NCBI GenBank assembly: GCA_021613535.1
Contig: CP075492.1
Location: forward strand, 2,108,001-2,172,000
Length of the DNA: 64,000 bases
Source: Adineta vaga
Lineage: Eukaryota > Animalia > Rotifera
Direction: 5' to 3'
Under the pieces are notes generated by a model. The model was given only the letters and a program-made list of their open reading frames with translations. It did no database searches and was not told where the DNA came from. Below are positions 47 through 43,400 of this stretch, piece by piece. The position numbers and the translations under genes are program-made. How positions within the stretch are numbered: position 1 is the stretch's first letter; every line of letters begins with the position of its first letter.

Positions 47-2274
47 AAGTGCGATCGATTTATCAATCCAAACTGACGGTATTTAGTCCAATGTATATTC
101 ATTCCCAAGACCATTGGTCAACATCGATTTTTTATTATGAGTATATACAAATCGAGGTTAATACAACAGGAACTTACACTATTATGTCCAATAGTACCAT
201 GGATATGCAAGCATTTTTATTTAATCATACTTTTAATTCTTCAATAGTAGATCAAGATTTTATTATATTCGACGATAGTAGCGGTGACAATTACCAATTC
301 ATGTTTAAAACCGTGTTTCAAGCTACAATAAAATATATTTTATTTATAACAACTTCTGTAGGGAACACAGTAGGAAGTTTTTCAATTATTGGTTTGGGTC
401 CAACATCGATCAATATTTTTTCAAGTGAATCAAACTAGGAATAAACTATTTCACATAAAATAGATAGTCTAGAATTGAGAAAATGAAAAATATGGGAGTG
501 AGGATTTGGTTTGTGAAAAAAGCAATCCTTCCGTCCATATCTTCACTCTCATAAATTAGTAAAAATCGATCTTTTCTTCTAGTTACATCTCTGATCAATT
601 CTCAACAAGTGCAATCATATTACTCATCAGCATTAACAACAAACAGTCCATTGTATGTTCATCCTGAATATTCTTCGCCAACTGTAGTTTTTTATTATCA
701 TGCTATTCAATTAAGCGTGATAACAACAGGAGCTTATTCAATATTGTCAAATAGTGTTTTGGATACGCAAGGATATATATATAATGATACTTTTAATTCT
801 ATATTTCCTACTCAAAATTTATTGTTAACCGATGACAATACTGGTGGCAATAAACAGTTCATGTTGACATTAGCTCTTTATTCTGGAAAAAATTATACCT
901 TAGTCGTAACAACATTCTGGCCGGGTTTTAAAGGAACATTTTCATTAACCACACGTGGTCCAGCATCGATTACTTTTTTACGGAGTAAGTCAATCTAATA
1001 AAAATACCATTTATGAGACTAGGCGAATTTTTAAACATATTCACATTTCTATTCTGACTCTTAACACATCCATGATCCTCACATATCTTCAGCCATCCTT
1101 TGTTTAAATGATTTCTTAAATCTGATTTTTTTCTATTATGAACCTTAGTGAATACAACAAGTATACAATCCACTTACTCATTGGCTTTGACGACATCGAA
1201 TCAATTGTATGTCCGTCCTGAAGCATATGCGCCAACTGGTGCTTTTTATTATCAGACTATTCAATTGAAAGTGTCAATAACAGGAGTTTATACTATCGCA
1301 TCTTATGGTACCATGGAGATAAAAGGATATATATATAATCATACTTTCAACTCTACATTTCCAAATCAAAATTTACTTATATCAAATGTTAACACTGGGA
1401 AAGACAAACAGTTCTCGCTTTCAATAAATTTTTATTCAGGGTTAAATTATGTCTTCGTTACAACAACATATTGGCCAAATGCCACAGGAACATATACAAT
1501 AATTGCAAATGGTCCAGCATCAATTAATTTTGTATTGAGTGAGTACATAGGATAAGAATAGTAATCGTTATACGATATGTATTAGGGAACTTACAATAGT
1601 GTTTCTCAATTAATAGTATTCCGTGTAAATCAGGACAAATTTTATACGAAAAATAAATAGTATTTATACATCTTTCTAGATTTCTTCCTTTAAACTATTT
1701 TCAATTCTCATTTCAGCGTAAAAACTTTTTACACTGCTGAGTTATTTGTATTTTCTTCTGGTTACATCTTGAGGGTGTGGGTGGGTGGGTGTGGAAGAGG
1801 AGAAACCTACACCCACACCCACACCCTCAAGATGCTAATTAAATACTGAATATTGACGAATTCTGTTTTTTTCTATTAGTTAACTTAACCAAGATACAAT
1901 CAAATTATTTATCTGCTTTAACAATATCTAGTCCAATGTATAAACGTTCTGGAAGTAGTGAATCATCAGCCACCTTTTACTATCAAGCTATTCAAATTCG
2001 TGTGAACATATCAGGTGTTTACAGTATATCATCGAATAGTACTATAGATACAATAGGATATATGTACAATAATACTTTTAATTCAACATTTCCTGATGAA
2101 AATTTACTCATATATGATGATGAAAGTGGTCACAATCATCAGTTTTTGTTCAACATCATGCTTCAAAGTATTACAAAATATATTCTAATTGTAACAACAT
2201 ATGAAAGAAATGTTATCGGATCATCTGCAATAGTTGTTCTAGGTCCAGGATCTGTTACTTTCATATATCCATAA
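47..2274 (+). CDS. 3' part of a multi-exon gene made of tandem ~125-aa beta-rich domains (PPC/DVUA0089-like), one domain per exon: 47-424, 583-984, 1149-1538, 1880-2274
   Basis: Four homologous ORFs (YYxxIQxxVxxxGxYxIxSxSxxDxxGYxYNxTFNS...DDxxG..QF). Each is bounded by AG/GT splice sites in phase 1 that join in frame, with a terminal TAA at 2272-2274. The domain name rests on motif resemblance only. Confidence 0.75.
1765..1834. repeat. Head-to-head telomere-repeat scar (G-tract, spacer, C-tract)
   Basis: CATCTTGAGGGTGTGGGTGGG...AAGAGGAGAAAC-CTACACCCACACCCACACCCTCAAGATG. Confidence 0.9.
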
Positions 2275-28322: not shown

Positions 28323-29952
28323 GCAACACCGCTAGATCCTAGTGACAAGTAACATGCTAAAATGAAGAAAATCGTATTTTTAGACTATTCCTTAGGAAAA
28401 TATGGCTTCTGTTACAATACCATTGGATATTCAATCTCTTACAACATCAGAAAATATGGAACTAGAAATCTTTTGTCTTGTTTGGCTTGATGCTAACTCA
28501 GTTGGTAAAGATGCGCGTAATACTGAACAACAACTGCGTTCAATTATTAATTACTTCAAAAAATTTCAAGATATTCCGTCCTGTGAAAGTTTCATTCGTA
28601 CACGAACATCAAATGAACGAGTTGTTATGATTGTTAGTGGTCGATTAGGACGTGAAATTGTTCCACATATTCATCATCTTCGCCAAGTTATATCTATTTA
28701 TGTTTATTGTATGGATAAAGAAAGCAATAAAAAATGGTCTCGAGATTATCGAAAAGTAAATACTAATTAGAAAAAGAATCTAAATTAAAATAGAATTTTT
28801 CTATCGATAGACAAAAGCAGTTGTTGTTCAACTGGATGAACTTGTTTCCCGAATTCAATCTGATCATAAAATTCAAAAGAAAATTGAAGAACCTTTATCA
28901 ATTAATATATTTACTACAGGTACATCAACAACTGGTTTAAATAGTGAATTTCTTTTTTCACAAGTTCTTCTTGATTGTCTTATTCGATTAAAATTTACTG
29001 AAACTGATCAAAGAGAATTAATTGAACTTTGTAAACAACAATATAAAGATAATCGTGCTGAATTAAGTAATATTCATGAATTTGAAGAAAAATAATTATC
29101 TAAAAATGCTTTATGGTGGTATACAAGAGAATCATTTTTTTATAAAACACTTAATGCTGCACTTCGTGGATCATCTATTCATATAATATTTCTTTATCGT
29201 AAATATATAAATGATATTCAATATCAATTAAAACAAAATCAAGTTAAAAATTCAATTCAAGTTTATCGTTGTCAGATGATGTCAAATGAAGAATTAGATA
29301 CTTTAAAAAACTATTCTCATCAATTTATTTCAATTAATTCGTTTTTTTCAACCAGTTTAAATAAAGAACAAGCTCTTGAATTTCTTCAAGTTCCTGATGA
29401 TACAGAAAAGTTAGTTGGTGTTTTATTTCAAATTAATGCTGATCCTAAAATGGCTGTAACAAAACCATTTGCTAATCTTAAAAAATTTAGTGAATTTCAA
29501 GATGAAGATGAAATTTTATTTATGATTGGATCGATTTTTCGATTGGACAACATCACGATTAACGAAAATGACCGAGTTTGGATTATACAAATGACATTAT
29601 GTAACGATGAAGAACATGATTTACGAGATGTTCTCACACATACGAAAGAACAATATGTGAGTAAAGAAACGAATTTTCACACATTAGGAAAACTATTATT
29701 GGATATGTTGAAATTTGAACTGGCTCAAAAATATTTAATACGTATGTTAGAACAACTTCCACTCGATAATTCATCAAGAATTGATATATATTTGGATCTT
29801 GCCAAAGTCGAAAAACATTTACGCAACGAAGACAAAAGTTTAGAATGGCGTCAAAAAGCAGCCGAGTTAGATAAACAAATTGGACCGAGTTCTCAATCCA
29901 ATATAGATAAATCAAATAAATTCATAGGTATGCTTATTGAAATAAATGACTA

Positions 29953-30019
29953 CAGTAAAACCTCTCTATAGTGGATACTCTCGGGACCATTCAGAAGTGT
30001 CCACTGTAGAGAGGTGTCC
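29953..30019. mobile_element. Truncated Tc1/pogo-like MITE end
   Basis: TA-CAGTAAAACCTCTCTATAGTGGA..TCCACTGTAGAGAGG; cut by a telomere scar. Confidence 0.55.
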
Positions 30020-32121: not shown

Positions 32122-32310
32122 GGGTGTGTTTGAAAATAGATATAGAAAGAATCAAATATTAGAAATCTTTTCATTTTGTCCACAAGATTAAAGATTCGAA
32201 TTTATTTAAAGTGTCCACATAGATATGCTTGAATAAGTACGAGAAACTTATTCGAAAAGTTCATTAAATCAGAGCAGGACTCGAACCCACATCTTCCGAT
32301 AACCGGTCTG
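32122..32310 (-). mobile_element. tRNA-headed telomere-joined element, copy B (5'-truncated in the anticodon arm)
   Basis: Reverse complement aligns along its length to 41675-41860; B-box GGTTCGAGTCC; ends CTATTTTCAAACACACCC. Confidence 0.85.
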
Positions 32311-32567
32311 AGGATATTGGCTGAATACCGTTCTGGTTTTCACGATCACATCATATCAGAATGGCTGATGCTTCGCTGAGACTCTGCTCTTCGCAATATT
32401 GGTTCCCCTGGCGTTGTTGTTCTAAAGTCATCGTTGTACTATTCATTTCTTTTGATTCGTAGTTATTAATAGAGATCAGGTTGTCGGAAATGCAGTTATC
32501 TGTTGTTTGGGCCCCTCTGAATCTTACTATCGTTTTCTCTTTTGCAATTTCGATTTTAAAGTATTCT

Positions 32568-32714
32568 ACCGGTTTCGACCTTGTCCAAGGGTCTCATCAG
32601 ATGGATTATGTCTGCATATCCTCACATCATGACTTCAAATGCTGAATGGCTATTTATAACAAAAGCATTGGAGAGAAATTATGTGATATGCAGACATGAA
32701 CTACCATGACCGGT
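32568..32714 (-). ncRNA. Type III hammerhead ribozyme with extended stem I (minus strand)
   Basis: ACCGG-TC-ATGG..long hairpin..CCAT-CTGATGA-GACC(cttggacaa)GGTC-GAAA-CCGGT. Confidence 0.85.
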
Positions 32715-32852
32715 GTGTGTCTGTCTTCTGACTCTTCGCAGGGCTCAACTACTCAAATACTAATGATTTTGTTGTCATACTGTAGTATGAAAAATAATCT
32801 TTATTATTTGAGTAGTTGAGCACTGAGAACAGTCAGAAGACAGACACACACG

Positions 32853-32997
32853 CCGGTCATGGTAGTTCATGTCTGCATGTTACATCATTTCTCTCGAAGT
32901 CTTTTCTTATGAATAGACATTCAGCATTTGAGGTCGTGATGTGAAGATATGCAGACATAATCCATCTGATGAGACCCTTGAACAAGGTCGAAACCGG
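32853..32997 (+). ncRNA. Type III hammerhead ribozyme with extended stem I (plus strand); predicted cleavage after C32858
   Basis: CCGG-TC-ATGG-tagttc-ATGTCTGCAT...ATGCAGACAT-aat-CCAT-CTGATGA-GACC(cttgaacaa)GGTC-GAAA-CCGG. Confidence 0.85.
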
Positions 32998-33589
32998 TAG
33001 AAACTATGCAAGGAACACGATTATAGAGACTTAAGTTAGTAATGTATATCTTTGCCGAAAACGAAGACCGACAGCGTTGTGCGAATTACCGTCTCACTCA
33101 GTCGTCATAGTTGTTGTTTCTTGTATCTATACAGGATCATTCTAAAACTAACAATATTCATATATAGTATGATCAATCGGTTTCATGTGAATATTACATC
33201 CTGTTGAACACAGAGAGCTACTTGAAGAGTTCCCTGAGCGAATTCGAAATCTAACTAATACGGATGATTATAAACTTCATATTCCCAATATAAAAATATC
33301 GGACATGATTCAGACTCTACCGATCTATATCGGTGTCATCAAAGGTCTTTCAGCAAAAAAAGTCAGGTAAAACAGATAAAATGCAGCAGAAGCATACAGT
33401 CTACATTGACCAAAATGCTTCTGCTGCTTTTTTTTATCGGAGTCAGAAATATGTATCCTTGCCTAAAATTCTCTGTAACGTTTACAGTAGACTATCTGTC
33501 ATCGAAACACTATGACGAGAAACATAAACATACATTTCACTTCCATACGATTACCGAAAATCAACTCAGCAATTAAAGCCAAACATAAA

Positions 33590-33814
33590 CCCACCGAATA
33601 TCGGGAGATGTAGGTTCGATTCCTGCTTTGATTTTATGATCTTTCTTTACAAGTTATTCGTACTTGTTTAGACATATCCTTGTGGTTGCATTTTCTTTAA
33701 TTTCGAAGATATTTCCGTGGACAAAAGAAATGATTATTTTGCTTTATAACTCGTTCATTTTCTTATTTTCAAACTCACCCTCACCCTCGCCCTCACACCC
33801 ACCCTCACCCTCAA
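33590..33814 (+). mobile_element. tRNA-headed telomere-joined element, copy C (diverged, 5'-truncated), followed by (CACCCT)n
   Basis: ATCGGGAGATGTAGGTTCGATTCCTGCTTTGATT head; same body hairpin; ends TTATTTTCAAACTCACCC-TCACCC...CCCTCAAT. Confidence 0.8.
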
Positions 33815-38857: not shown

Positions 38858-40671
38858 ATGGCGCTTCCTGAATTACGACAAATTGTCAACGAATTTAAAT
38901 CCCAAAAAATATCAAAACAATTAAAAAGACGTGCTCAACGAGAATATAAAATTATTCAAAGTCTACGTCGATTATTACGTGAACGACCTGATATTATGAT
39001 TTGTCGAACAGAAAAGACCAAAACATTATATATTGGTAATCGAATGACAATGACTCGTAAAGCATACGAATATATGACTAAAACATCAGCTTATGAAGAA
39101 ATTACTGATAATGGTTCACCTTTAACTTTTATATTACAAGGTCTACATACATTACTTGATTCTATTGTGCGCACACATGGTCTAACTGATAAACAACGTA
39201 AAAAATTACTTCCAAATTTAAATCGTGTAGAATTAGCACATTATCATGGTTTACCAAAGACACATAAGATAGGAAACAAAACGCATTATTTTATTTATTT
39301 TTTAATAATTCTACTTTTAAAATTTAATATAGGATGGAATACCATTATGACCTATTATTGCATCTATTCATTCACCGAAAACATTGCTGTCGAAATTTCT
39401 AAATGATCTTCTTGCACCTATCTATCTACAAGTGGCACGTGACACAACATTTATTAATGATATCGATTTAATACGAAAATTAGAAACTCATGTTAACCAA
39501 GGTTTTTTTAATTCAACCACAAAATTTGTTATAGCTGACGTGAAAAATCTTTATACGATGGTACCAAGAGATGGTGCAATACTAGTATTGGCTAAATTTT
39601 TAGAAAAATATGCAAAAAATAGAAAAATCGGTACATTGACAATTGATCATATACTACGTATGGCTCGTTTCATATTGGATACAAATTATTTTGTTTATAA
39701 TGATAAATACTACAAACAAATACGTGGTGGAGCCATGGGTTCCGCTTTCACACAAGTTCTAGCCAATATTTATATGTTTGAATGGGAACAAGACTTAATT
39801 GCATATATACACCAACATAATGGAATCTATGGCAGGTATGTAATGTATTCACCAACGAAATAGATTTATTCTATTATTTTTCTTCCTTAGATATATTGAT
39901 GATATCTTCATCGTTACGAATCAACCAATTGCCGAGGTACAAGTGGAATTACAAAAAGCTCAAATCAAAGATATTAATATTGAGATAACACCAGAAATTA
40001 GTTTGTCAGTCAATTTTCTCGATGTATCAATTACTAATGAAAATGGTCAATTAAGAACATCGATCTATCATAAACCAACTGCCGAACCATACATATTACC
40101 TTATACATCAGATCATCCACGTCATATTCATCGTAATATACCATATACAGCTTTATTACGTGCAGCTCGTCTTTGTTCACATGTCGAAGACTTTAATACA
40201 GAACGTATTCGTATTGACATGTCTCTCTTATTAAATAATTATCCACCAAGATTTATCACTTACCAATTTAAAAACTTTTTTCACAACTACAATGCACTTC
40301 CTGTCTTAGAACAATTAGATACAGATATCTATCAACGATTACATCATGAAGTACTACATAAACCTTCACGACGTGAAAAACAATTGAATACCTCGATAAA
40401 AGATCCAGTTCAATATCCTGCTGTCTTACAAAAAAAACCATGGAATAAATCAATTATGTATGTAAAATATAAATATGATAGTGCTCTAACAACACACTTT
40501 CCAAAACAATTCAATCAATGGTGGAATAAACATTTTAAATATGGCCCCAATGATCTGAATAATGCACGCATTCTTCTGATAGGAAACACCAATCGAACAC
40601 TTGAACAATACTTAATCCATAAAAAACCATCAAAAGAAATACTAACCAAAATACAATCAACAGAAAACTAA
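38858..40671 (+). pseudogene. Athena reverse transcriptase with introns at ~39269-39332 and 39836-39890; TGA at 39348-39350; first donor mutated
   Basis: YHGLPKTHK, ADVKNLYT, GGAMGS, R|YIDD split by an intron, NFLDV, YHKPT, SDHP; no GIY-YIG domain. Confidence 0.9.
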
Positions 40672-41201
40672 TATCATTTGTGCATTTAAATTTCAACAAA
40701 AAACACTTTTCCTCTCTCATTCAATACTAATGTACAATTCCTCCTATTTTCCTTCACTAACAAAAAGACTATTTCTTTTTTTCTTCAAATAAAACCCATT
40801 CATTATTCCTCTGTTACTCACCTATCATTCTCGCTTCCATCTCTTCATAAACACATCTATGTAATCCTTTTTAGATTATACACATTTACATATGCAAACC
40901 TCCAAACCAAGACTAATTATCTATTACATATTGATGACAAGTAATGTATCATTCATATATCATAAACTTCTTTCTTCTATCTTCAGACTCAGCAGACTAG
41001 CCGAACAAGTGACCAAATCGCGATCGTACGATTGCTTTGAATTATTTTGTTATCTGTAAACTCACCATTTACGTAAGAAATCATTATATTCTATACATTT
41101 CATGTAATTACTATTATATATATATGTTAGATGTTTCCTTCTTTAAGTTAACTTCTATAATTTACATGACTAATTATTATATAGTTTCATATAGTTCTTA
41201 A

Positions 41202-41245
41202 CATACCCGTTGAGTTCCTTAAGCAAGAACGAAACATGTCGTATG
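41202..41245 (+). ncRNA. Type I hammerhead ribozyme with a degenerate core (probably inactive)
   Basis: CATAC-CCGTTGA-GTTC(cttaagcaa)GAAC-GAAA-CATG-TC-GTATG; a more decayed copy lies at ~40985-41070. Confidence 0.7.
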
Positions 41246-41645
41246 ACTGCTTTGAACTATATTCTTATTTGTAAACTCACCCTCACCCTCACCCTCACCC
41301 TCAAACTCACCTTAGTTGTTACGACCTTGTTACGAATAAAGATCTTAGTTTCGTAATAGAGTTATGGAAAATGTAGTAACTCTAATGTCCTGATATGTAC
41401 ATTGATATCTTTTGATTATCTTTTGATTATCTTTTGATTTTCTTAAGATATCATTTATGTATCGTGGATTAAGAGTTCTGTTTTGCTACATTCGAAGTTT
41501 CTTTTGTTGCTTAACTAGGTTCTTATAGTCCTCGTGCAACAATAAGAATCCTTATTAGTTAATCATTTGATCATTAATGTCCTGAACTATCGATTTTTGA
41601 TTTATTCAGAGTTTTGATATGTTGTTATTAACTAACAGAAGAAAA

Positions 41646-41716
41646 AGTCAGATAGTTTAATTGGTAAAATAGCCGACCAGTTATCGGAAGATGTGGGTTC
41701 GAGTCCTGCTCTGATT
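41646..41716 (+). tRNA. tRNA-like cloverleaf (Thr-like AGT, non-canonical loop) forming the head of a repeated element; probably not a decoding tRNA
   Basis: Acceptor AGTCAGA/TCTGATT; D-arm GTTT-AATTGGTA-AAAT (A-box); CCGA-CCAGTTA-TCGG; T-arm GTGGG-TTCGAGT-CCTGC (B-box). Confidence 0.7.
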
Positions 41717-41895
41717 TAATGATCTTTTTGAATAAGTTTCTCGTACTTATTCAAGCATATCTCTGTGGATACTTTGAATAAATTCGACTCTTTAGTCTTG
41801 CGGACAAATGAGAAGATTTCTAATGAATGATTCTTTCATCATCTATTTTCAAACTCACCCCTCACCCTCACCCTCACCCTCACCCCTCACCCTCA
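41646..41895 (+). mobile_element. tRNA-headed telomere-joined element, copy A (complete head), followed by (CACCCT)n
   Basis: tRNA head, ~145-nt body with the hairpin TTGAATAAGT-ttctcgt-ACTTATTCAA, then CTATTTTCAAACTCACCC and telomere repeats to 41895. Confidence 0.85.
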
Positions 41896-42082
41896 GCACG
41901 AAGAGAAGACACGTCTCATGTTAATCCATAGTGAAATGCGTGTATAATGTGAGCACTCACGAGTGTCTCATGAATAAACGTAGAAGCAAGAAGAAGCGAG
42001 TATGTTAGATGCTATGAAAGTCGAATGGTTGTAGTGGCCGGCGCCATGGACATCAGCAGCATGGGTGACTTGTTCGTGGCGA

Positions 42083-43400
42083 TCACTTTGCTCTAATGAA
42101 GGCGGCGAACAGTGATGTGCGTGCGATTCTTGTTCGCCAGCGCTGAATGGCCTCGATGAAATCTTTCATGTACGATTGTGAAGGAACGATGAAGACAACG
42201 AAAATCAACATGGGCGGCGCAAAGGAGATGAAGTAGCCAATTACATAGAGACGCGCATTGCGTGGCGATTTCATGCATCCGGATAGGAATGAGATGATCA
42301 GACGAGGCACGGCTAAGATCGCCAACATGGTTGGTGAAATGAGCAGATGCTTGTGTTGTTTGATCTGTTCGCGTAGAATCTCCTTGTATGATTGCTTTTT
42401 ATCGACTTTTGCTCGACGACGAGCGGCAGCGATGATGATGATCAACGCACAAAAGCAATTGGCCGCGAGTGGCACGAAGAAATGCAAGGCATTGACCACT
42501 CGATCGAACACTTCGATGGATGGTGTGTACTGAGCGATGCAGAACGTGCGCGACTCTTCTTCATCGTCGACGAGACCGCGATGCAAAGGATCATGGATGT
42601 GTGTACCGACGGTGAAGAGCATGACGAATAGAATGACCCATTTCACGGTACGTTTACTCTTGACTTTGTCGAATGTCACTCCTTGAACAATCGTCACTGC
42701 TCGTTCGATCGCCACACAAGCACTGAGCCAATCGCTACAGCTGAGCAGAACGCGAACAAGAAAGTCCAGACAGCGACACTGACCACCGAGACTAGTACGG
42801 GTACGAAGAGTGCCGATCTGTGAGGCGATCAGTATGGCGAACTTGACGATTAGGACGTTGATCATGATGAGTGAAATCACTGATGAAGCAAAAATATACA
42901 GACCACAGCTAGTGCTGGACGCGGTCTTCGCGCGGACGGTGATCATCGATAACACACTGCTGAGGAATCCCACGGCGAACATCAACGTAGTCAGGGTGAT
43001 GGTCATTTTGACAATGTACTTTTGATTGTCGAGTTTGACGTGCGGTCGAATTTGATAGCCAAAGATGAGGTCCAAGGAAAGCGAAGATCCGTGAGTGGAA
43101 AGGTGACATCGCGAACCGACGTAACAATCTTGGCAGACACAGAACGACGATATTTGACAGAGTTGATCATCTTGTAGGCATTGCCCGGCATTTTCACACG
43201 GTGAATGTCCACGGCAATCGTACGTCATGTTGTAATTGAACTTGAAGCAATTGGCTTGTCGCGAAGGCTCACAGATGCAGAAATGGTCGAAGTCATGAAA
43301 ACACTGCAACGCGGACTGTTGCAGACAGGGCAGATGATAGAGTTTGATGCGCTTGATGATGTGTTGATTGACAATGGTCGTGTTGAACAACTCGTCGATC
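42083..43400 (-). pseudogene. 5'-truncated EGF plus rhodopsin-type 7TM GPCR gene fragment, GC-rich
   Basis: CENAGQC...CVCQDCYVGSRC EGF; seven hydrophobic segments with WLSACVAIER; the frame runs into a telomere tract with no true start codon. Confidence 0.85.

Follow-up and report, generated by a model that had tools for sequence, protein, structure and literature searches.

A repeated tRNA-containing unit among retroelement ends

The subject of this analysis is a unit of about 215 nucleotides (nt), containing a tRNA-like domain, that lies in three copies (A, B and C) in a 64,000-nt stretch of the genome of the rotifer Adineta vaga (contig CP075492.1, here G000:C3:2,108,001-2,172,000, called the window throughout). 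The region around the copies is a chain of telomere-type retroelement ends. A sequence-only reading had placed the three units here, and had taken them to be either a tRNA-headed short interspersed element (SINE) partnering the reverse transcriptase (RT) of Athena elements, or the 3′ end of an Athena or Terminon element with a tRNA mimic. When the window was scanned with R1, a covariance model that we made from alignment A4 of the common core, exactly these three copies were recovered and no other, at 41671-41757(+) with 111 bits, 32226-32312(-) with 107 bits and 33588-33674(+) with 93 bits.

Copy A does contain a full cloverleaf, as had been noticed: ARAGORN calls it tRNA-Thr with anticodon AGT, and the Rfam tRNA model scores it at 47 bits, against a gathering score of 29. 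Copy B is recognised as a tRNA by neither program, and copy C reaches only 15.5 bits with Rfam (E = 8). Copies A and C have the terminus TTTTCAAACTCACCC followed by about six telomere-type hexamers, but copy B ends in TTTTCAAACACACCC, with a single hexamer (ACACCC) before unrelated DNA; the statement that all three are fused to telomere repeats is correct for A and C, and in B it comes down to this one hexamer. None has a poly-A tail, in agreement with the earlier description. Copies B and C had also been described as 5′-truncated, which is not so, since upstream of tRNA position ~28-36 both continue into sequence common to other copies, over 5-7 kb in the class of copy B. These two are the tails of a mirror-image pair with its palindrome centre near 32782 and a hammerhead on each arm. 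The palindrome that joins them head to head is about 440 nt long (32564-33002) and has one hammerhead core per strand, and the same layout is seen at locus L013.

In all, the tail consists of a tRNA-derived domain, a short trailer, a hairpin that we call H1, a variable body of about 90 nt, a terminal box (TATTTTCAAAC) and one telomere-complement hexamer. The first hexamer of the tract after copy A probably belongs to the element, the remainder being old telomere; the tandem junction in L003/L016 retains one hexamer unit only.

We searched the genome (100.8 Mb in six contigs) for further copies. A BLAST-type search with four subfamily queries returned largely one set of about 37 copies at 72-100% identity, and R1 gave at least 35 matches, five of them new and more diverged (a lower bound, with 150 of its candidates scored). 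The family amounts to about 40 copies, nearly all of them on chromosomes 1, 3, 5 and 6 and no more than a few Mb from a chromosome end. The terminal box (TATTTTCAAAC-like) and at least one telomere-type hexamer are present in all 30 copies whose 3′ end was read, mostly with two to nine hexamers, and the DNA past the telomere tract is unrelated among loci. The sequence-only reading had proposed such a genome-wide tally, and would have been undone by a majority of copies lacking telomere junctions or by an ordinary tRNA gene spread through segmental duplication. Neither was found, because the copies are telomere-joined and, with flanks that differ among loci, are not segmental duplicates. Telomere-capped 5′ truncations or head-to-tail chains occur at L002, L006, L008, L009, L017, L041, L043 and L048.

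Two environmental metagenome contigs carry the full module. On metagenome contig Ga0116226_10170033 (L037) an environmental module copy is adjoined by an open reading frame (ORF) of 346 amino acids, at 594-1634(+), that appears methyltransferase-like by eye. At another site (L011/L023/L024; G000:C3:20,297,000-20,298,200), three module copies lie inside 1.2 kb; two of them form an identical inverted pair, which ARAGORN calls tRNA-Asn(GTT) owing to one anticodon-loop change. The non-telomeric border of many telomere-type tracts reads ..CCC and then TCAAG, TCAAT or TCAAA, whatever DNA comes next (window 33813, L004, L007, L013, L021, L023, L024, L026, L028, and L051 at ~1455).

Short and long elements with a common tail

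The copies fall into two types. Copy A exemplifies the S type, a non-coding element of 400-560 nt in which a common leader of 240-335 nt is followed by a complete tRNA-like cloverleaf and then by the tail. In the L type, to which copies B and C belong, the tail closes an Athena-like element that is about 7 kb long and has a Penelope-type RT upstream, and only the anticodon arm, the T arm and the 3′ acceptor strand of the tRNA remain.

S-type elements have no ORF and no coding capacity, and no hammerhead was found in 41301-41896 by Rfam at E values up to 10 or by regular expressions for the CUGAnGA and GAAA cores. The leader occurs only with full-tRNA copies, that of the copy A subfamily (334 nt) at about six loci. 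In the window and in L003, a piece of the 3′ terminus of the element itself (11 nt and 129 nt, respectively) stands before the leader, which makes a head-to-tail junction with a single hexamer. The 5′ ends of S-type copies lie at -334, -313, -277, -123, -77, -40, -36 and -23, or inside the module, and several of the cut ends are directly telomere-capped or abut another Athena end. Among the 5′ ends examined, no copy starts at or near tRNA +1. To the question whether 5′ ends stop at the first tRNA position or run on into shared upstream sequence, the answer is therefore that copies extend, into two types of context, and the unit is not tRNA-headed, the leader being copied as part of it. The motif (T/C)GTGGA(T/C) occurs three times in the S type, in the leader at 41474-41482 and in the body at ~41763-41771 and ~41797-41805, and is kept in L051.

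L051, on chromosome 5, is a single-copy and far more diverged relative of the same build. It has a leader with the same conserved blocks, H1, the GTGGAT motifs and an end that reads ..CTATTAC-TCACCC. Its tRNA is GC-rich and nearly canonical, with a standard D arm (ARAGORN Thr-TGT; 49 bits with Rfam); a BLAST-type search for a host tRNA gene resembling it matched L051 alone. The build of L051, its near-canonical tRNA and the environmental contigs with the module indicate that the short element with a complete tRNA is old, and that its tRNA was once an ordinary one.

The L-type copies L004, L010, L012, L014 and L015, which form the class of copy B, match copy A only from tRNA position ~30, and upstream they have 3.1 to 7 kb in common at 92-97% identity. 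This upstream sequence contains consecutive plus-strand ORF pieces with the motif series LPKPHK, RPIISS, FDVTDLYTMIP, GGAMGS..ANVYM and YIDD, which we take to be the pattern of Penelope-like RTs. In a protein atlas the pieces lie nearest to a Rotifera cluster annotated 'Reverse transcriptase domain-containing protein' (0.96), and also near RVT_1 clusters, and the C-terminal piece has 43% identity to an ORF of the neighbouring Athena-type element U and 41% to another Athena-type ORF on chromosome 5. The assignment as an RT thus rests on motifs, atlas neighbours and pairwise similarity. The RT exons were searched singly, never joined; Pfam gave no RT match on ten window ORFs, and no GIY-YIG endonuclease match on the ORFs after the RT, having been blank on all pieces alike. 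One L-type element begins about 7.07 kb from its end, beside inverted telomere repeats.

L-type elements also retain a hammerhead. Because the Rfam hammerhead models missed the CUGAUGAG..CGAAAC motifs that are visible in the window (32572-32600 and 32966-32994), we used a regular expression, which locates the core CTGATGAG..CGAAAC in L004, L010, L012, L014, L015 and L026, in each case 235-263 nt ahead of the tRNA domain and on its strand. This is about 450 nt from the element end. Of the earlier proposal of an Athena or Terminon 3′ end with a tRNA mimic, it therefore stands that B and C end long RT-encoding elements, but not that the mimic replaces a hammerhead, nor that it serves for a cut by RNase P, as a convincing 5′ acceptor strand is wanting in most L-type copies.

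Between S and L elements, the tails reach 97% identity. L004 is 97% identical to L002 and L003 over 217-220 nt, and the last ~190 nt of copy A are 97% identical to the tail of the RT-encoding Athena-like elements. In several independent L-type lineages the homology between the types begins inside the tRNA, at positions ~28-37, and there is no credible homology between the S leader and the L-type 3′ untranslated region (UTR). We infer from these junctions that an RT copying S-type RNA may have jumped, within the tRNA domain, to the 3′ UTR of an Athena as its new template, which would have produced autonomous elements with an S tail. As the complete tRNA is the more ancient form, we hold the opposite direction, from L to S, to be less likely. 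Two tail subtypes have recombined in one L copy. Since S elements have no RT of their own and their tail is common with that of the L type, they must be copied in trans. The functional core of the earlier idea of a SINE partner survives in this form: copy A is a short non-coding element that shares its tail with an Athena-like partner, although it has no SINE-like tRNA head.

The features of the window are collected in Table 1. Element U is without a tRNA domain. Its ORF at 39943-40671 has 43% identity to the L-type RT C-terminus (E = 2e-69) and 49% to the Athena in L051, and at its 3′ end it shows homology to the end of an Athena with a hammerhead. The hammerhead core of U is altered, reading CCGTTGAG where its chromosome-5 homologue has CTGATGAG (window 41200-41276), and a second, internal copy of the terminal ~40 nt of U lies ~210 nt upstream of the real end (41030-41068). 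Directly after the telomere tract of copy A, a GC-rich ORF at 42083-43390(-) has a rhodopsin-family seven-transmembrane match (PF00001, E = 3.7e-11) and looks like a captured piece of a host gene. The ORF at 29276-29971(+) has a sub-threshold match to ADP-ribosyltransferase exoenzymes (PF03496, 18 bits against a cut-off of 23).

Table 1. Coordinates of the module copies and of adjoining features in the window
Feature	Position	Strand	Basis or remark
Element U, neighbouring Athena-type (RT C-terminal ORFs and 3′ UTR, end TTATTTGTAAAC)	38858-41276	+	neighbour only, outside the unit
Four TCACCC repeats that separate element U from the short element	41277-41300	+	direct reading
11-nt remnant TCAAACTCACC of the preceding unit's 3′ terminus, tandem junction	41301-41311	+	same junction in L003
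S-type leader, 334 nt, non-coding, no hammerhead core	41312-41645	+	~6 loci; blocks shared with L051 and L021
tRNA-like domain of copy A, cloverleaf, anticodon AGT, C33/U37, A- and B-box-like sequences	41646-41717	+	ARAGORN, Rfam
Conserved trailer ending in a T5 run (41725-41729)	41718-41729	+	majority fraction 0.84
Hairpin H1, 8-bp stem, 7-nt loop	41730-41752	+	compensatory changes in 5/8 pairs
Variable body with two conserved GTGGA(T/C) motifs	41753-41842	+	alignments; majority fraction 0.70-0.72; no supported structure
Terminal box CTATTTTCAAAC	41843-41854	+	nearly all copies; majority fraction 0.88
Telomere-type C-strand tract after copy A	41855-41896	+	about six telomere-type hexamers
Copy B, L-type tail that starts with the tRNA anticodon arm and includes H1, the body, the terminal box and a single ACACCC	32122-32312	-	R1, genome search
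L-type 3′ UTR upstream of copy B, degenerate tRNA 5′ part, cut at the palindrome centre	32313-32782	-	93% identical to L004 over 660 nt
Hammerhead core upstream of copy B	32572-32600	-	regular expression
Hammerhead core before copy C, in the mirror-image arm	32966-32994	+	regular expression, direct reading
Copy C, diverged L-type tail, 72% identical to A	33588-33774	+	R1; weak tRNA match 33571-33634
Telomere-type tract after copy C	33775-33812	+	about six telomere-type hexamers

A probable 3′-terminal module and its tRNA domain

We consider that the unit is the conserved 3′-terminal module of one lineage of endonuclease-lacking, telomere-attaching Penelope-like elements of the Athena/Terminon type, carried by both RT-encoding L elements and non-coding S elements, rather than a tRNA-headed SINE, and we put the probability of this reading at roughly 0.7. 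In the published model of Athena mobility, the terminal C-rich hexamer of the RNA would pair with the G-rich telomeric overhang, whose 3′-OH would then prime reverse transcription. S elements would borrow the RT of L-type or Athena elements in trans, by means of the common tail.

Conservation is strongest in the part of the tRNA that both types have. The majority fraction is 0.90 in the anticodon arm, 0.95 in the variable region and T arm, and 0.89 in the 3′ acceptor strand; beyond the tRNA it is 0.86 in H1, and it falls to 0.67 in the tRNA 5′ half. In the 16 full copies the cloverleaf is retained, with 89.9% of cells paired, compared with 35-45% in slid controls, and a G-C to A-U exchange occurs in the acceptor stem of five sequences. 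Copy A has C33 and U37 in its anticodon loop, as aligned by Rfam, and this is, by its sequence, not a working loop. ARAGORN recognises nine genomic and two environmental copies, none of them L-type, and no copy without the H1/body tail was found in the genome searches. All lineages retain two adjacent hairpins, the 3′ strand and the trailer, which argues against both an obligatory RNase P or RNase Z substrate and a role of the B box only.

Hairpin H1 covaries. Compensatory changes affect five of its eight pairs across 29 copies, so that the compensatory change noticed earlier in the body hairpin is real and one case of a general pattern. The covariation score of H1 was reached in none of 500 shuffles, its pairing is 88% against 33-45% in slid controls, and the hairpin is predicted in every single-sequence fold. 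When the whole module was analysed with RNAalifold, H1 alone was recovered, and pairing other than the cloverleaf was proposed in the tRNA region. A second hairpin before the terminal box, seen by eye, is unsupported (z ~0, inconsistent registers).

The position of truncations suggests a function for the tRNA domain. Of the nine truncations within the module, six have their first nucleotide between positions 81 and 100, inside H1 or immediately ahead of it. The cluster lies 9-28 nt 3′ of the tRNA domain, on the side from which the RT approaches, and its probability in a simulated scan statistic is ~0.005. Together with the switch points in the domain, it fits a stable or protein-bound structure that is hard for the RT to pass, and that is possibly the RT's own binding site. 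The tRNA-derived core, comprising two hairpins and the 3′ acceptor strand, might then be a structured handle held by the RT or by a host tRNA-binding factor, and might also be a roadblock and template-switch site rather than a Pol III promoter of the mobile RNA; this part of the mechanism is more tentative than priming at the overhang. A more specific version is a long shot: the core would be the anchor site of a TERT-related Athena RT, the S units would be small RNAs with a protein-binding domain and a telomere-pairing end, and the pile-up of truncations would be the footprint of a block resembling a template boundary.

Several observations weigh against our interpretation. The Pfam search was blank on the RT pieces, as was a sequence search of the PDB with an RT exon. 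Covariation in the tRNA domain is thin, amounting to a single acceptor pair. The 5′ acceptor strand is not above chance in most L-type copies, where a shuffle test is uninformative because 6/7 matches are common by chance in AT-rich DNA; what is conserved in the L type may thus be sequence and not a tRNA fold. Thermodynamic folding misses the cloverleaf, and z-scores are weak (-0.5 to -1.9), so the case for this structure rests on conservation and not on energy. The proposed role as handle and roadblock would be built on nine truncated copies and on analogy. Both S elements with an intact left neighbour directly follow an Athena of one 3′-end type, and S elements in this position could therefore be other than independent units. 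Finally, the available sequencing runs consist of contigs that lack ends and strand and whose RNA status is guessed.

These runs allow no conclusion on the RNA, because contigs give neither ends nor strand. Copy A is in none of the runs recorded as RNA. Four further runs are RNA by guess only; in them, module copies lie in contigs of 1.3-2.7 kb with a depth of 58-80, and the RT region is in short contigs with a depth of 2-5; the breaks of these contigs coincide with points of subfamily divergence. At L031 (9271-9918; runs X5-X8, guessed RNA), tail copies have 10-40 times the depth of the RT region, and their contigs extend more than 1 kb past the telomere tract.

Among the other explanations, the Pol III-transcribed SINE has obvious attractions. 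Its A and B boxes would drive an RNA of ~215 nt that is copied onto telomeres by the Athena RT, full copies have a good cloverleaf with an A-box-like and a perfect B-box-like sequence, and the tail is common with that of an autonomous element. We nevertheless regard it as very improbable, because no copy starts near tRNA +1, because the leader of 240-335 nt is copied along, and because T4-T6 runs are found in nearly all copies, in most of them after the tRNA (~79), in the H1 loop (~91) and at the terminal box (~200). A transcript from an internal promoter would stop at such runs long before the telomere-complement end, a caveat that the earlier reading had itself raised, and the A box is missing from L-type copies. 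That loss also bears on the idea that the conserved core acts in DNA, either through a B box that recruits TFIIIC to form a chromatin boundary, or as a short Pol III gene that ends at the T5 trailer. Here GGTTCGAnTCC is nearly invariant, and about 20 of 30 copies have a T4-T5 run after the domain; but the anticodon arm, the 3′ acceptor strand and the trailer (0.84) are conserved as much as the B box, and we judge such a role quite improbable. Segmental duplication of an ordinary tRNA gene along with its flanks has a chance close to nil. There are a few local duplicates (L003/L016, L011/L023/L024, and B/C around the palindrome), whereas about 30 loci, spread over five of the six chromosomes, have unrelated flanks past the telomere tract, the 5′ ends are variable and carry telomere caps, C33 and U37 would make decoding impossible, and a stand-alone copy without the tail was not found in the genome searches.

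Two further explanations keep the link to Athena elements. The tRNA-like domain could be a processing signal at which RNase P, RNase Z or both define the ends of the mobile RNA, as in MALAT1/mascRNA. Full copies retain the acceptor stem, T arm, G18G19 and T-loop, and the truncated copies that start 9-28 nt 3′ of the discriminator could reflect an RNase Z cut followed by trimming to H1. We think it unlikely, because no copy starts at +1 or at position 73-74, because most L-type copies have been propagated without a demonstrable 5′ acceptor strand, and because a cut would leave the priming end without the leader or the RT message. Alternatively, the S type could be the terminal segment of a composite Terminon-like unit, running from an Athena RT through a hammerhead, a short C-rich tract and the leader to the tRNA and tail. 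Such a unit would explain why copy A and its relative L051 each lie directly behind an Athena with the same 3′-end type. The tracts and leader start points are unlike between these two loci, a partial S unit and not an Athena precedes L003, other S copies are telomere-capped or lie behind Athena ends of other types, and in chains of this kind an Athena end is the most frequent neighbour in any case, all of which makes the composite decidedly doubtful.

Relation to known retroelements and tRNA-like RNAs

A conserved terminal module on long and short elements, if this is what the unit is, has several consequences. To our knowledge, the hammerhead is the sole cis element so far discussed for RNA recognition and chromosome-end priming in Athena and Terminon elements, and a second, strongly conserved, tRNA-based 3′ module would be a defined RNA for tests of RT binding, stalling and template switching. 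It would mean that small non-coding riders with a shared tail exist not only for LINEs (the SINEs) and for endonuclease-bearing Penelope-like elements (the retrozymes) but also for Penelope-like elements that lack the endonuclease. For annotation, it means that standard tools will label these loci, wrongly, as tRNA-Thr genes.

The nearest comparison is with the Athena and Terminon elements of bdelloid rotifers (Gladyshev & Arkhipova 2007; Arkhipova et al. 2017), in which, according to later summaries, (ACACCC)n and (TCACCC)n are the reverse-complement telomeric repeats at the 3′ ends, and in whose described ends a hammerhead is immediately followed by such C-rich repeats (PMC6431247, PMC8557442). 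The elements analysed here resemble them in their reverse-complement repeats joined to a telomere tract, their telomere-capped 5′ truncations, head-to-tail chains and subtelomeric location and, in the L type only, the Penelope-type RT upstream, as the S type encodes nothing. They differ in that a tRNA/H1 module of ~215 nt sits where the described ends have the hammerhead, which is ~450 nt from the end in the L type and absent from the S type. In the accessible literature, which does not extend to the primary 2017 Terminon paper, no tRNA-like part is described for Penelope-like elements.

With tRNA-derived SINEs and their LINE partners, the S type has in common that a short non-coding tRNA element has a tail near-identical to that of an autonomous element, which implies trans-mobilisation, and that it has a tRNA-derived region with A and B boxes. 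In contrast to SINEs, the tRNA here is internal, behind a leader, with T runs inside the element and without poly-A or target-site duplication. The partner is a Penelope-like element that would prime on chromosome ends, and that itself keeps two-thirds of the tRNA. In the accessible literature, non-autonomous partners are described only for endonuclease-bearing Penelope-like elements, namely the animal non-LTR (long terminal repeat) retrozymes, which are their hammerhead-bearing derivatives (PMC7229834; bioRxiv 10.64898/2026.07.22.740005). Retrozymes are likewise small non-coding Penelope-like partners with tandem junctions, but they are defined by circular RNAs and by hammerheads of type I, and the elements to which they are tied contain an endonuclease, whereas the S type is without a hammerhead and would belong to the endonuclease-lacking, telomere-attaching group.

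tRNA-like structures near RNA 3′ ends are familiar from the TLS (tRNA-like structure) of plant viruses, the Mauriceville retroplasmid of Neurospora and the mascRNA of MALAT1. By analogy, the domain described here would also be a tRNA mimic within a longer RNA, possibly read by an RT or by tRNA-processing enzymes; it differs in lying ~140 nt from the 3′ end, in having no CCA and in the loss of its 5′ third in the L type. Athena and Terminon elements are the closest retroelement relatives of telomerase, and a parallel with telomerase RNA and TERT can be drawn, in that a TERT-related RT would act on an RNA with a conserved structured domain close to the end by which it pairs with the G strand of the telomere. 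The whole RNA would here be copied once, whereas telomerase copies a short template repeatedly. If the RT does anchor on the tRNA core, the layout of the S type would be halfway between a retroelement template and a telomerase RNA. In this comparison the known part is the route of Athena mobility, and the new part is the tail module and the short rider that carries it.

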